Shown here in pieces: positions 29,090 to 45,972 of a DNA stretch of 64,000 bases. This DNA comes from Blastocystis sp. Blastoise (lineage: Eukaryota; Protista; Bigyra: Opalinata), in assembly GCA_039096225.1 (NCBI GenBank), contig JBBPEB010000034.1, forward strand, positions 1,054,001 to 1,118,000, in the 5' to 3' direction. A program made the position numbers and the translations under genes. The notes below the pieces were generated by a model. It was given only the letters and a program-made list of their open reading frames with translations. It was not told the DNA's origin and searched no databases. Position 1 is the stretch's first letter; every line of letters starts with the position of its first letter.

Positions 29090-29097
29090 TTTGCGTA
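29090..29097. repeat. Left 8-bp target-site duplication TTTGCGTA
   Basis: Identical to 45965-45972 and abuts the left TIR. Confidence 0.88.
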
Positions 29098-30017
29098 CAG
29101 CGACTTCCAAAAGGCCCTTTTTTTTTGCGGCGTCGCAATTGTCAGCAAAATTTGTGACACAAAAATGAAAAATGATAAATAACTTTTTTGTTTTTAATTT
29201 TAAAAATATAAAAAAAATATTTTCAAACTCAGCTCATCAAGACACGTCGATTTACACACTTTTCATGAAAAAAGGACCGGGTGACATAAAAAAGACAATT
29301 CATTCATTGACTATTATATTATGACGTGACAGTTTTTGACTAAAAACGTATTATTTTGATATATAATGTATGACTATTTGAAAATAAGTCAAATAAAATA
29401 TTTTTTGTGACACATGTTGTGACAGATACATGACTGAAAAGTATATAAGTCATCAAATAACAACAAGTATGATTCCTATGTTTGACTATTCGTGTTAAGT
29501 TGGGTGACAAATAAAAATATTTTGTGACAATAGTCAATTGTTTATATACTTTTTTTTAAGCTATTTCAAATAGTATTATTTATGTGTTATAATGAATAAT
29601 ATTGTCAATAAACTCTAAAATAATATTATAAAAAATAATAATGTAATTAAAAAGTTTTTGTTTTTGTTAAATATCACGAAGTAGTCTTGTAGGGACTCTA
29701 CAGATACACCCTGACTAGTAATAAAAAAAATAAACGAAAAGCATATTAAAATAATTATTTTCAAAAACCAAACAAAAAACAACAGTATGAACAAAAGTCA
29801 GATTTTTAAAAACAATACTTCAGACAAAATGTTTTTTAATAGCCTTTAAAAATGGTTTTAAAATGTATTTTACATGTAGAATAAGTCACACAACACATTT
29901 ATAATATTTATATTGTAAAATATATTATTTTTATGTTTAAAAAGGGAAAAATAAAAAAAGGTTAGTAGTCACTGGTTTTATAATTATTATATGACTTGAT
30001 GATAAATATTATATAAA

Positions 30018-30092
30018 GGGTATTTGGTCGAATGGTTTATGCGCATAAAATTTTTACATGGTCGACGGATCGATCCTTATAGGGGACATTTT
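30018..30092 (+). pseudogene. Degenerate tRNA-derived module with Pol III A/B boxes
   Basis: A-box TGGTCGAATGG 30025-30035, B-box-like GGATCGATCC 30067-30076, then GGGGACATTTT. Cloverleaf stems do not pair. Confidence 0.55.
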
Positions 30093-30350
30093 CTTTTAAA
30101 TTTTTTTGACAACTATTTATAATGATTCAATCAACTCTGTGTCATTTTTAGTATTTAAAAAACGTTTACATCACTGAGGTGTTCTTTTTGAGTTCATTAT
30201 CACCACATCAATAGACAATTTATTTTCAAAAATTAATAATTTCTATTTAATAGTTATTCTAAGCATGTCTATACTGACATAAATATTATGAAAGATAATG
30301 AATATAAAAATTTGAAGATTTAGCTATATTTAAATTTATTATTATTATAT

Positions 30351-42800: not shown

Positions 42801-44914
42801 TAAATCACAAAACTAAGTATAATGAATGAAAAAGTAAGATAAATATAATTGGATGCACCAAAACACAATTTTTAATAGCTCCACAAAACTGTTTATGTCG
42901 AATATTCTTTTTTCTTAAAAGACGATTTTCTCCTTGGATTTTCAAAATTGACCAATCAAATTTTGAGTATCGATTTTTGTCATAAGTATCTTGTAAATTA
43001 CAAAAAATCTTGCCGTTACAATAAAATGCACCAAAGTTACAGCCATTTGAAATTTTTGAAACGGCTCAGTTAGGCTGCTAAATTAATATATATAATATAT
43101 AATAATATTATTGAGAGAATATAATATAAAATAAACTAATAATAAAAGGATATATAGATTTCAGTTTTAGAGCAATCATTAGGACTAATTCTACTTTGAA
43201 TAGTACAATATATATAAGAATTAATCATATCAATATCTTCTTCTTCTTGATTTAGAAGACGTACATATAAATGACCATTAGAAATCTCACGAAAGAAACG
43301 AATGGATAATGTATATTGTGAAGTAGAATCCATAGTGATTCTATAACTAAAGAATTGATCGGATTCACCTGGAAATAAAGGAATATCAAATCCTTCTGAA
43401 GATGTCACATATAATTTTATTATAAAATTATTCTGATTCACTAAATTATAATAACGATCTCTTACCATTAATGTAAAATCAACACTTCTATATAAAGGAA
43501 TAATTGAATAGATAGTAGAGATAGAAGAGTAGAGATAAGAAGGAACATCACTATATACTGATAATTGGAATGGAGTATTAATCACAGATAAACCATTCAC
43601 AATCCATCTAAAATAAACAGATTCTGAAGTATAAGAAACAAATTGATATATTAATTTTTCATGTAATGGATCTTCTTTTGAAGTAAAGAAATAAGATTGA
43701 TCTGTATTTAATAGAATTGTTCCTGTAAATAATGTTGTAGGAACTGTATTATTATATTCATCACGAAAATATATTTCAAAATCATGAATAATACCAACAC
43801 TAGTAGTTCTATTTGGTGGTATAAAAATAGTATTAGAAGGAAGAAGAGAACCATGAGTTACTGTCCATGCAGATAAAAATGGAGAATAATGAATAGGAAT
43901 ACCATCTACTGTTATATAAATATCATATATAGCTACATAGATAGCTTTTAAATATAAATAAAGAGAAGAAGAAGAAAGATAGGAGAAGGTATATGTAGGA
44001 AGAAATGGAACTATATATATATATAGAATAATAATAATAAATAAATAAAATAAATACCTTTTCGATCACTAATAAAAGTGACTTTGATTCGTTGTTCGAG
44101 ATCGATATCTATAGGTATTTGTCCACATCGACTATTAAGGAATAATTGAAGTGGATATATAGATCCTGCAGTACTCGTGAAGAAGAGAGGATATTCAGAA
44201 GGAGTAATAGTAGTAGAAGTTAAAGGAATCGTTGATACTGTAGGAGATATCAATTGGATGCCCTAATAGATAGATAGATAGATAGATAGATAGATAGATA
44301 GATAGATAGATGAATATATATATATATATATATATATATATATATATATATATATATATATATACAACAAAATTTGTTATTTTCGTTTTTAACTAGCAAA
44401 CAAAAGCACAGAATTCAAGAATGGCAATAAGAAATAAATTTTCTATATAATATATAAATTGATGATAAATATAAAACATGAATAAAATAAATAAAAATTA
44501 AATAAATAATTTTAATAGGAAAAAAGAAAAAAAGAGAAATGTGTCAATGTAATAAAGAAACAAATAGATATATTTATATACCTTCAATATTGCTTTGATT
44601 TGTTATTTGGAAGAGGTATAGACAATAATAACCAAGAAACCTAAATGAATTAAAAAAGGAATTAGATAAAATACCTTATAAGAATCAAATCAACGATTCC
44701 ATGTTATAAATGTATTTGAAATAGACCAAGGAGACTGTTTGAAAGGAAGAGGAAATCCAAAATGGGGAATCTAAAAGAATTATGTAAAATAATATGATAT
44801 ATTAGATAAATAAATACTTACACAGCATTAGGATTGCTTAAAAGCATCTATAGTCCTCGTAATAAGTTCTATTTCTACATAGAGACAACAAATTAAAAAT
44901 AAAAATGTATTCAT
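36860..44914 (-). CDS. Filamin/Ig-fold repeat protein, cargo of the hAT element (>20 exons, both ends unresolved)
   Basis: Filamin-type repeats DGIPIHYSPF, NGLSVINTPF, FRDEYNN, VRDRYYN, AGNIISINIKFFDIYNN, TVVPG. Frame traced through spliced exons from 44262 to ~38300, with further exons to ~36950. The blocks at 44370-44914 do not give a continuous frame. Confidence 0.7.
38475..38540 (-). other. AT-AC U12-type intron in cargo gene
   Basis: 5' ATATCCTTTT, 3' TTCTTTAATCTATATAC. Joins ..TSPGTYK|TIPHLP.. in frame. Confidence 0.8.
40200..43153 (-). other. AT-AC U12-type intron in cargo gene, expanded from ~85 nt to 2,954 nt by Helentron copy C
   Basis: 5' ATATCCTTTT at 43153, 3' TTCTTAATTCTACTTTTTAC ending at 40200. 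Joins ..SKTEIY|SPISFAG.. in frame. Confidence 0.8.
40220..43089 (-). mobile_element. Helentron/Helitron2-like element, copy C (inverted, intronic)
   Basis: Reverse complement of copy B end to end with only scattered differences. Both termini intact, unrelated flanks define the element boundaries. Confidence 0.85.
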
Positions 44915-45964
44915 ATTTAAATTCAAATCTTTCAGTCAAATACTAAAAATATTCTTAAAAATACATTTTTTATTCTTCAGTTTTTTTTGAGATATTCTAT
45001 TAAGATTATTAGTTTTAACGCGTCAGACAATACATTATTTACACAATTCTATTGTATCCCACTACTTTTAGCTTCTCAAAAATAACTCATTTTCTTTGAC
45101 TTTCTGATCTGTTTATATACTCGTCTAAAAACTACTGTTTTCAACTTCAAATGCTTTTCTATTACATAAAATTACTCTAATAGCAACTTTTAAAACGACT
45201 TTTATTTGATACTAAAAAATAACTGCTTAGTTTAAACTTCTGACAAAAGTTTTTGATGCGGAACCTTTAATTATACTAAAATATAATGTAAAAACTATTC
45301 TAAAATCTTTTTGTGCTTTGATATATAACAAAATATAAACAGACTCAGTTTTGGACAAGAAAATTATTCCCGTAAATACAAAAGAATCAAAACTCTGGTC
45401 TTTTATTCAGCCAAACAAATAGGCTCGGTTCATTCTTTCAGTGTAAAAAAATAATTTTTTGACTTTTTGACTTGGTTGTCGTTTTGACTCATAGATGTCA
45501 TTTTATTCACTTTTACACATATTTATGAATTTAAGAGGTCTTTCACTTTGAACAGAGCTATAAAAAATTCTAAAATATTGACCCCATTATTGTCAAAATG
45601 GCGACTTAGAATGAAACAGAAACGTTTTTGATATTGTATAACACTTTAGAATAATATAAAGATGTCAATTCATTGATAAAATATGCTTAATAGTTTTTTT
45701 GAGTCTAAATCATTAATCTACATAAAAGTTTCCTGAAATATTCTTCTTTTGTATTCAAGTCTTTTATTTATTGAATTATTATTGATTAAAAATGTTCTTA
45801 TGCAAAAATAAGCCATGAAAAAGCTTTAAATAGTCAAAAGTACCTATCAGTGAGAGAAATCACAATCTGGCTTCAGTTTATCGAATTCAGCCGAATTAAG
45901 CATGGCTGAAAAAAGTGTCACAAAAGTGTCGCCGCAAGTGTCACAGACACTCGGGAAGGCACTG

Positions 45965-45972
45965 TTTGCGTA
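45965..45972. repeat. Right 8-bp target-site duplication TTTGCGTA
   Basis: Immediately follows ..GGAAGGCACTG and is identical to 29090-29097. Confidence 0.88.

Follow-up and report, generated by a model that had tools for sequence, protein, structure and literature searches.

Classical hAT transposons measure 3-5 kb and give rise to Ds-like derivatives by internal deletion, with no long stretch of foreign DNA as cargo. Elements that carry fragments of host genes are known as well. In plants, maize included, they have been described as Pack-hAT or Pack-TYPE elements (Gisby & Catoni, 2022; PMC8903248), and in Dothideomycete fungi a hAT has transduplicated the gene for histone H3 (Dhillon et al., 2019; PMC6710886). 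The transposons of Blastocystis are essentially undescribed: transposable elements were given a total fraction of 5.6-7.5% in tortoise isolates, with no hAT families reported (PMC12129017), and a literature search pairing Blastocystis with hAT returned nothing relevant among its best matches. The stretch analysed here, called the window throughout, comprises 64,000 nucleotides of contig JBBPEB010000034.1 of Blastocystis sp. Blastoise (positions 1,054,001 to 1,118,000). Window positions 29098-45964 very probably (at roughly 0.85) represent a non-autonomous hAT copy with a core of ~8.3 kb, which carries a fragment of a filamin-repeat gene as cargo, was moved in trans and was later enlarged by nested insertions. 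Carriage of gene fragments by hAT elements is already known; the present element is a further case, in a stramenopile gut protist.

The element is like a plant Pack-hAT in that a non-autonomous, hAT-type element with terminal inverted repeats (TIRs) moves host gene fragments between its ends. It is unlike one in its host, a stramenopile gut protist, in its single 4.5-kb cargo piece with many introns inside an 8.3-kb core, and in its tiny and very young family of six copies, which differ by apparent exact intron loss. With the fungal histone H3 case it shares the capture of host coding sequence by a hAT and its subsequent amplification. There, however, a complete hAT took up a small housekeeping gene and reached hundreds of copies that repeat-induced point mutation (RIP) has inactivated, whereas the present element is transposase-less, has as its cargo part of a repeat-protein gene that is itself multi-copy, and shows no sign of mutational decay in its young copies. 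Like Ac/Ds, hobo and Hermes, it combines an 8-bp target duplication with short imperfect ends, short subterminal repeats and the state of a non-autonomous derivative moved in trans. A comparison is also offered by a second hAT family of the same genome, family B, which likewise has an 8-bp duplication, CAG ends, host-gene cargo (a UTP20 fragment) and near-identical copies. Unlike the present element, family B possesses its own 873-amino-acid (aa) transposase and other 11-bp ends and subterminal repeats.

The first-pass annotation of the window had delimited the element by an 8-bp duplication at 29090 and 45965, by imperfect inverted ends agreeing at 9/11 positions, by short motifs shared between the ends and by clustered GTGAC, and the sequence bears out all four. 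The duplication reads TTTGCGTA on both sides. The reverse complement of the right end GGAAGGCACTG is CAGTGCCTTCC, which pairs with the left CAGCGACTTCC at 9/11 positions, and the two ends share TTGCGGCG (offset 28-35) and TTGT (offset 42-45). Of seven GTGAC motifs on the plus strand of the 8.4-kb element, five fall inside the first 322 bp, where ~0.3 would be expected, and the right end, read inwards, has GTGACAC twice, at offsets 21 and 44. Concentrated and inward-facing at both ends, the GTGAC(AC) motifs are the presumed transposase-binding sites.

That these ends are more than a chance pairing follows from the presence of five further copies with identical termini and duplications of their own. 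The search covered the assembly from which the window is taken (34 contigs, 33.34 Mb, ~20-23% G+C). Among sequencing runs, one probable RNA data set of the organism contains a quarter of the words sampled, a share that is not interpretable by itself. As the annotation had anticipated, the arms proved multi-copy and always paired: a left arm (99% identical) and a right arm (100%) stand 8.3-8.5 kb apart at exactly five other places. These siblings, named L041-L045 (element coordinates below are those of L041 unless window positions are given), measure 8,269-8,465 bp and have the same termini, interior, cargo and orientation. Each is flanked by a perfect 8-bp duplication, and all five differ (ATAAAAGG, TATATAAT, AATATATA, ATTATAGT and TTTTTCAA). 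Segmental duplication was rejected as the source of the six copies, as homology stops exactly at the inverted repeats and the 8-bp duplications differ.

Both features expected of hAT ends are present. The 8-bp duplication occurs at all six copies, each time with different bases, and at two larger elements, E1 and E2 (see below). The TIRs are short, imperfect and begin with YAG/CAG, and eight related elements give the consensus CAGYGNCTTCC. Across the eight duplications, T occupies position 2 in 5/8 and A occupies position 7 in 3/8, proportions that are uninformative in a genome of 77% A+T. The target consensus is nTnnnnAn for Ac and nnnTAnnn for Buster.

The core itself is pieced together from four parts: a left arm of 1.36 kb, the 4.5-kb cargo fragment, an old dispersed repeat of ~1.5 kb and a right terminus of 110 bp (Table 1). 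The spacer that follows the left arm matches two other loci weakly (70-72%). The dispersed repeat, R, has more than 30 genome copies of ~1.5 kb (for instance L027-L040) that are 72-83% alike, with one sharp end, ..CCAGTG (..GCCTACCAGTG), opposite an (AAT)n run; it may be retroposon-like. Judged by these matches, the right arm as described earlier is largely an old copy of this separate repeat.

On the minus strand, the open-frame map shows the cargo as a run of short exons. Exons were searched singly, with the window's own intron-free open frame as query. In a HMMER search of a protein library, a 264-aa exon block of the window matched the six-repeat filamin protein P0003 (E = 1.2e-6) and also the filamin/GEX2 immunoglobulin (Ig) protein P0005. 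The block aligns repeatedly to the repeats of P0003, with a G.PI.GSPF motif, and a protein language-model atlas likewise points to filamin/GEX2 Ig clusters. A single-sequence AlphaFold model of the block reached a predicted local distance difference test (pLDDT) score of 34.5, its fold being unusable, and a search for homologous proteins found none within the length range covered. Two hallmarks of Pack-TYPE elements are found in this family: the interior comes from host genes also present outside the element (at least nine loci), with the cargo in 6/6 insertions, and the element is non-autonomous, having no long open frames besides the exons of its cargo.

The proposed history is as follows. 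A hAT transposase supplied from another part of the genome would recognise the CAGCGACTTCC / CAGTGCCTTCC ends together with the subterminal GTGAC(AC) repeats. Excision would be followed by reinsertion across an 8-bp staggered cut, leaving an 8-bp duplication at every copy. The window copy would have inserted itself 13 bp ahead of the ATG of a Cdc6/ORC1-like gene, and three Helitron-like insertions, 8.6 kb in total, would then have doubled its size.

The copies differ from one another in an unusual manner. Apart from one AG/GA swap, no substitution separates the five siblings, yet they vary in length over the range given above, and every length difference of at least 8 bp is one exact cargo intron. 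Among the six copies ten cargo introns are polymorphic, nine of them GT-AG and one U12-type AT-AC (element ~2791-3812 in L041-L045, window 43139-44065; Table 1). Five introns are missing altogether from the window copy, and the loss of the four adjacent ones gives rise to its 309-codon open frame. As the deletions are exact at GT..AG or AT..AC and keep the frame, they must derive from spliced RNA.

Whether the spliced RNA acted in the cell or entered through the assembly process is a question on which real loss and a polishing artefact are rated about equal. The assembly relied on Flye and racon, on Polypolish run with Illumina DNA and on a single POLCA round (PMC12129017). There is an even chance that spliced RNA-seq reads used in short-read polishing removed the introns and that the real copies keep all of them. 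Both DNA and RNA short reads were made, and the POLCA round is termed only 'short-read polishing' (PMC12129017); an aligner that does not allow for splicing can span introns of 40-65 bp as deletions. Six introns also differ among five young copies at zero substitutions, which would need a loss rate thousands-fold above that of per-base mutation. Against this, the Polypolish rounds are stated to have used Illumina DNA (PMC12129017) and the Nanopore consensus was built from DNA alone. A nested genealogy can accommodate the losses, an argument that is weak given the few events, and loss is seen in 0/9 paralogous loci for the one exon examined, where the 42-bp intron of the adjacent block is present at 9/9. 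It is tentatively conceivable, at a little short of even odds, that the differences are real. Cargo on an active transposon would then be stripped of spliceosomal introns, the U12-type AT-AC intron and the four adjacent ones included, at a rate comparable to transposition, and a spliced RNA or complementary DNA would be the likely template in homologous gap repair after hAT excision.

The relationship among the copies may be read from the same comparison. Between window copy and siblings, the arms are 99.4-100% identical, the interior 95-99% (in windows of 500 columns) and the exon block ~98.7%. The 45-bp intron, lost from four siblings, is still present in the window copy, which hence represents a lineage of its own and a somewhat older one, in keeping with the three insertions nested in it. 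The five siblings appear as a sister lineage amplified so recently that near-zero substitutions have accrued. Within the exon block, the window copy and the siblings differ by 6 synonymous and 2 non-synonymous changes and one codon indel, and no copy contains a stop once introns are removed. In this small sample, the differences weakly suggest purifying constraint or variants imported from functional paralogs.

Aligned to L041, the window copy contains two extra blocks, of 5,730 bp (~30355-36084) and 2,858 bp (~40223-43080). Without them it computes to 8,279 bp, in agreement with the ~8.3 kb estimated in the annotation, and with them to 16.9 kb. The two blocks comprise three copies (a, b and c) of one 2.87-kb element with a strong 3' hairpin, c being 99.6% identical to b and 93.8% to a. 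Copy c can be read as inserted cleanly between an A and a T, without any duplication. The tandem pair a/b, whose boundaries are uncertain by ~16 bp in AT-rich sequence, is separated by TATATATT and may also be read as an 8-bp duplication, TATATATT. The three nested Helentron-like copies claimed earlier hold as to their number; the 3' hairpin and the A^T fit of c are Helitron-like, and the alternative reading of a/b leaves their assignment as Helitron-like not certain. A cargo paralog (C26:33476-39940) is interrupted by ~2 kb within ~20 bp of the position of copy c; the AT-rich cargo intron is suggested to be an insertion hot spot.

None of the five siblings, aligned to the window copy, has any of the nested inserts. 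Since the three copies are private to the window copy, there is no evidence that the 16.9 kb moved as one piece. The claim that everything between the ends moved as one unit stands for the 8.3-kb core, which five siblings share, and does not extend to the full length; by these alignments, the mobile unit is the core. It is unlikely that the entire composite, nested copies included, transposed into this site together. Size would be no barrier, given that some related elements reach 16-24 kb and still have intact duplications. Such a transposition is opposed, however, by the absence of the inserts from every second copy, by the 99.6% identity of b and c, which points to their recent arrival, and by the simplicity of the order in which the core came first and nesting afterwards.

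Sequences related to the cargo are also found away from the element. At least nine other loci match the 4.5-kb cargo at 93-97% identity (for example C8:2331263-2335808 and C16:2106595-2110208), and all nine paralogs, where contig ends could be placed, lie in the first or last ~20-115 kb of contigs. Homology to the paralogs always stops at the same two points (query 1021 and 5535), and three of the loci share another, internal breakpoint at 1941-1945. None of the at least nine paralogs adjoins the termini, the spacer or the R repeat of the element. The first cargo exon opens at the boundary without a start codon, and the cargo is therefore a 5'-truncated fragment; it keeps its introns while its 5' end is missing, which indicates uptake as DNA. 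Taken together, the cargo is, by sequence comparison, a 5'-truncated gene fragment taken up as DNA from a multi-copy family located near contig ends. An intron-bearing host gene had been claimed inside the element, and this is correct as to the filamin-type repeats and the real introns; what is present is a fragment without a start codon from a multi-copy family.

A reversed direction of transfer is distinctly improbable. The cargo would then not have been captured, and the loci at contig ends would be element-derived fragments spread by segmental duplication between chromosome ends. All paralog matches do end at the same two boundaries, as if one fragment had been copied around. The paralogs, however, must be older, as they are 3-7% diverged whereas there is identity among the young copies of the element, and none of them carries the adjoining spacer, R repeat or termini. 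The first exon breaks off at the boundary and has no start codon, as a part of some longer gene would, and the different internal breakpoint of three loci likewise speaks against a single copied fragment. Capture of the cargo from this paralogous family is the preferred reading.

The source of the transposase must be sought outside the six copies. Genome-wide searches with Dimer_Tnp_hAT (hATC), DUF4371 and the 873-aa family-B transposase gave no match inside any of them. Two larger elements, E1 (C15:688927-707904, 18,978 bp) and E2 (C28:220278-243914, 23,637 bp), have a left terminus 97-98% identical to that of the present element over 123 bp. Their right-end duplications were predicted from the left flanks and then sought by pattern search, which found GGAAGGCACTG+TAAAAATT at C15:688919 and GGAAGGCACTG+ATTTAAAA at C28:220270. 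E1 and E2 thus have the same 11-bp ends, with 8-bp duplications TAAAAATT and ATTTAAAA. Each contains a weak Dimer_Tnp_hAT match in element orientation, and the left 6 kb of both is ~90% identical to the interior of family B.

Other relatives may encode a longer transposase. In six further elements with CAGYGNCTTCC ends, the first 400 bp of the left arm show 86-90% identity. DUF4371 (Pfam cut-off, 32.1 bits) is matched in three elements of the network, in long frames 3.4-4 kb inside the left end and in element orientation; two of the three, on C18 and C10, are among these six, and the third, on C8, is tied to the family solely via an 82% match to the first 123 bp of the element (Table 1). All three are candidate autonomous partners. 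Of the transposase with BED, DDE and hATC domains and matching TIRs for which the annotation had proposed a search, the matches comprise a weak hATC match in E1 and E2 and DUF4371 in relatives, with no one element showing the full domain set. The need for a transposase in trans agrees with its absence from all six copies, and the protein that moves the 8.3-kb element is one that we infer.

Family B is 16.2 kb long and has at least 17 near-identical copies, exemplified by L058+L059 (C13:139763-155975), with ends CAGGGGTCACC / CAGGGTGTGCC, an 8-bp duplication ATTGGTTG and GCGCTTAA-like subterminal repeats. Its 873-aa protein shows Dimer_Tnp_hAT and a weak DUF4371 match. Inside family B lies a truncated relative of the present element, with a right terminus ending in GGAAAGGACTG and a left arm 84% identical to element 117-1358; UTP20_N-like open frames stand between its arms (L058:8337-9661, minus). 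The family B transposase was rejected as the mobiliser, in view of the different ends and subterminal repeats and of the lack of a B-like protein in E1 or E2. In a further family of ~25 loci (for example C16:388114-388176 and C25:941000-941062), the first 63 bp of the left terminus are shared at 86-87%, and the end is CAGTGACTTCC; in their vicinity, no right terminus to go with it was detected.

Other superfamilies than hAT also make 8-bp duplications. The duplication, the CAG ends and the domains in relatives together nevertheless place the family in this superfamily, and membership in another one with 8-bp duplications (P, Zisupton, Novosib or some Mutator-like elements) is very improbable: the element does encode no transposase of its own by which to judge it, but its short ends, beginning with CAG, are of the hAT kind, the elements that share these ends contain Dimer_Tnp_hAT, the relatives whose arms are homologous contain DUF4371, and the truncated relative sits in a bona fide hAT, family B.

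Several points weigh against the interpretation as a trans-mobilised hAT with captured filamin cargo. The copies compared are those of the assembled sequence. The hATC match of E1 and E2 is weak (21.7 bits, in a 222-aa frame), the genome-wide search gave no DUF4371 match in either, and both could be defective elements in their own right. Where long DUF4371 frames occur, in turn, the elements have no hATC match at E <= 0.01, and their ends differ from the left end of the present element. The proposed transposase link depends on the positions of domain matches. As to the cargo, the Pfam Filamin model is not significant on its exons and no Pfam family is significant on single exons. The parent gene beyond the capture boundaries is putative, with the paralogs known by their coordinates and by homology across the cargo span.

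Table 1. Coordinates of the features of the window, of sibling L041 and of related elements, and distribution of the polymorphic cargo introns.
Feature	Coordinates	Strand or frame	Remarks
Target-site duplication, left copy	window 29090-29097	.	TTTGCGTA; same 8 bases at 45965-45972
Left 11-bp TIR	window 29098-29108	+	CAGCGACTTCC; identical in 6/6 copies, also in E1 and E2
Left arm (element 1-1257) with subterminal GTGAC(AC)	window 29098-30354	+	99% to five siblings; 84-89% to related left arms
Nested copies a (~30355-33220) and b (~33221-36084), tandem head-to-tail	window 30355-36084	+	absent from five siblings
Left-arm remainder (to ~36201), then spacer	window 36085-37059	+	arm homology to relatives reaches element 1358
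Cargo, 3' part, intron-bearing exons	window 37060-40222	-	filamin-repeat gene fragment
Nested copy c, inverted, in AT-rich cargo intron	window 40223-43080	-	absent from siblings
Cargo, 5' part, ending at the presumed capture boundary	window 43081-44265	-	first exon 44262-44014, no start codon
309-codon open frame	window 43139-44065	-	filamin-type Ig repeats; four adjacent introns exactly absent
Dispersed repeat R, diverged copy	window 44270-45853	+	accounts for the bulk of the right arm
Right terminus with GTGACAC repeats	window 45854-45964	+	100% in six copies; 83-87% in related elements
Right 11-bp TIR	window 45954-45964	+	GGAAGGCACTG; last 11 bases of the right terminus
Target-site duplication, right copy	window 45965-45972	.	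TTTGCGTA
First exon of Cdc6/ORC1-like AAA+ gene	window 45986-46369	+	AAA_16, E = 7e-7
hAT left arm	element 1-1358		shared with larger hAT elements
Spacer	element ~1394-2104		weak matches elsewhere
Cargo	element 2220-6734		93-97% identical to at least nine loci
Diverged dispersed ~1.5-kb repeat	element 6739-8311		72-78%
Right terminus	element 8312-8422		
DUF4371 frame, C18 element	C18:65317-65835	1039 aa	40.7 bits; homologous left arm, CAGYGNCTTCC end; element starts at C18:61856
DUF4371 frame, C10 element	C10:133040-133555	807 aa	40.6 bits; homologous left arm, CAGYGNCTTCC end; element starts at C10:137017
DUF4371 frame, C8 element	C8:1433907-1434305	733 aa	23 bits, below cut-off; element starts at C8:1430207
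No intron missing			L042
45-bp intron			missing in L041, L043, L044 and L045
42-bp intron			missing in L044 and L045
40-bp intron			missing in L045
51-bp intron			missing in L044
65-bp U12-type intron (atatccttt...ac)			missing in L044
41-bp intron			missing in L043 and the window copy
Four adjacent introns of 51, 49, 47 and 42 bp			missing in the window copy only; kept by five siblings

The genes flanking the insertion had been named as TLDc and Cdc6, and both assignments are plausible. An upstream exon (27946-28206) has a weak TLDc match (E = 0.017), and downstream the first exon of the Cdc6/ORC1-like gene matches AAA_16 as listed in Table 1. The right end of the element lies 21 bp from the ATG at 45986, which itself is 13 bp past the duplication. 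With an element end at its start codon, transcription of this gene must start in the right terminus or read through it.

The intron differences have consequences under either explanation. If real, they would be rare direct evidence on how introns are lost, and the family would constitute a natural system in which RNA-templated intron loss could be followed copy by copy. If not, they would reveal a polishing artefact that affects the intron statistics of the assembly.

What sets this element apart is its size, its very recent activity, its intron polymorphism and its membership of a network of hAT elements that are giants. The window copy sits 13 bp before the start codon of a replication-licensing gene. 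As far as the assembled sequence can tell, the genome of this Blastocystis harbours a network of unusually large and recently active hAT elements, of up to 24 kb with both ends and the duplication confirmed, that shuffle fragments of host genes.

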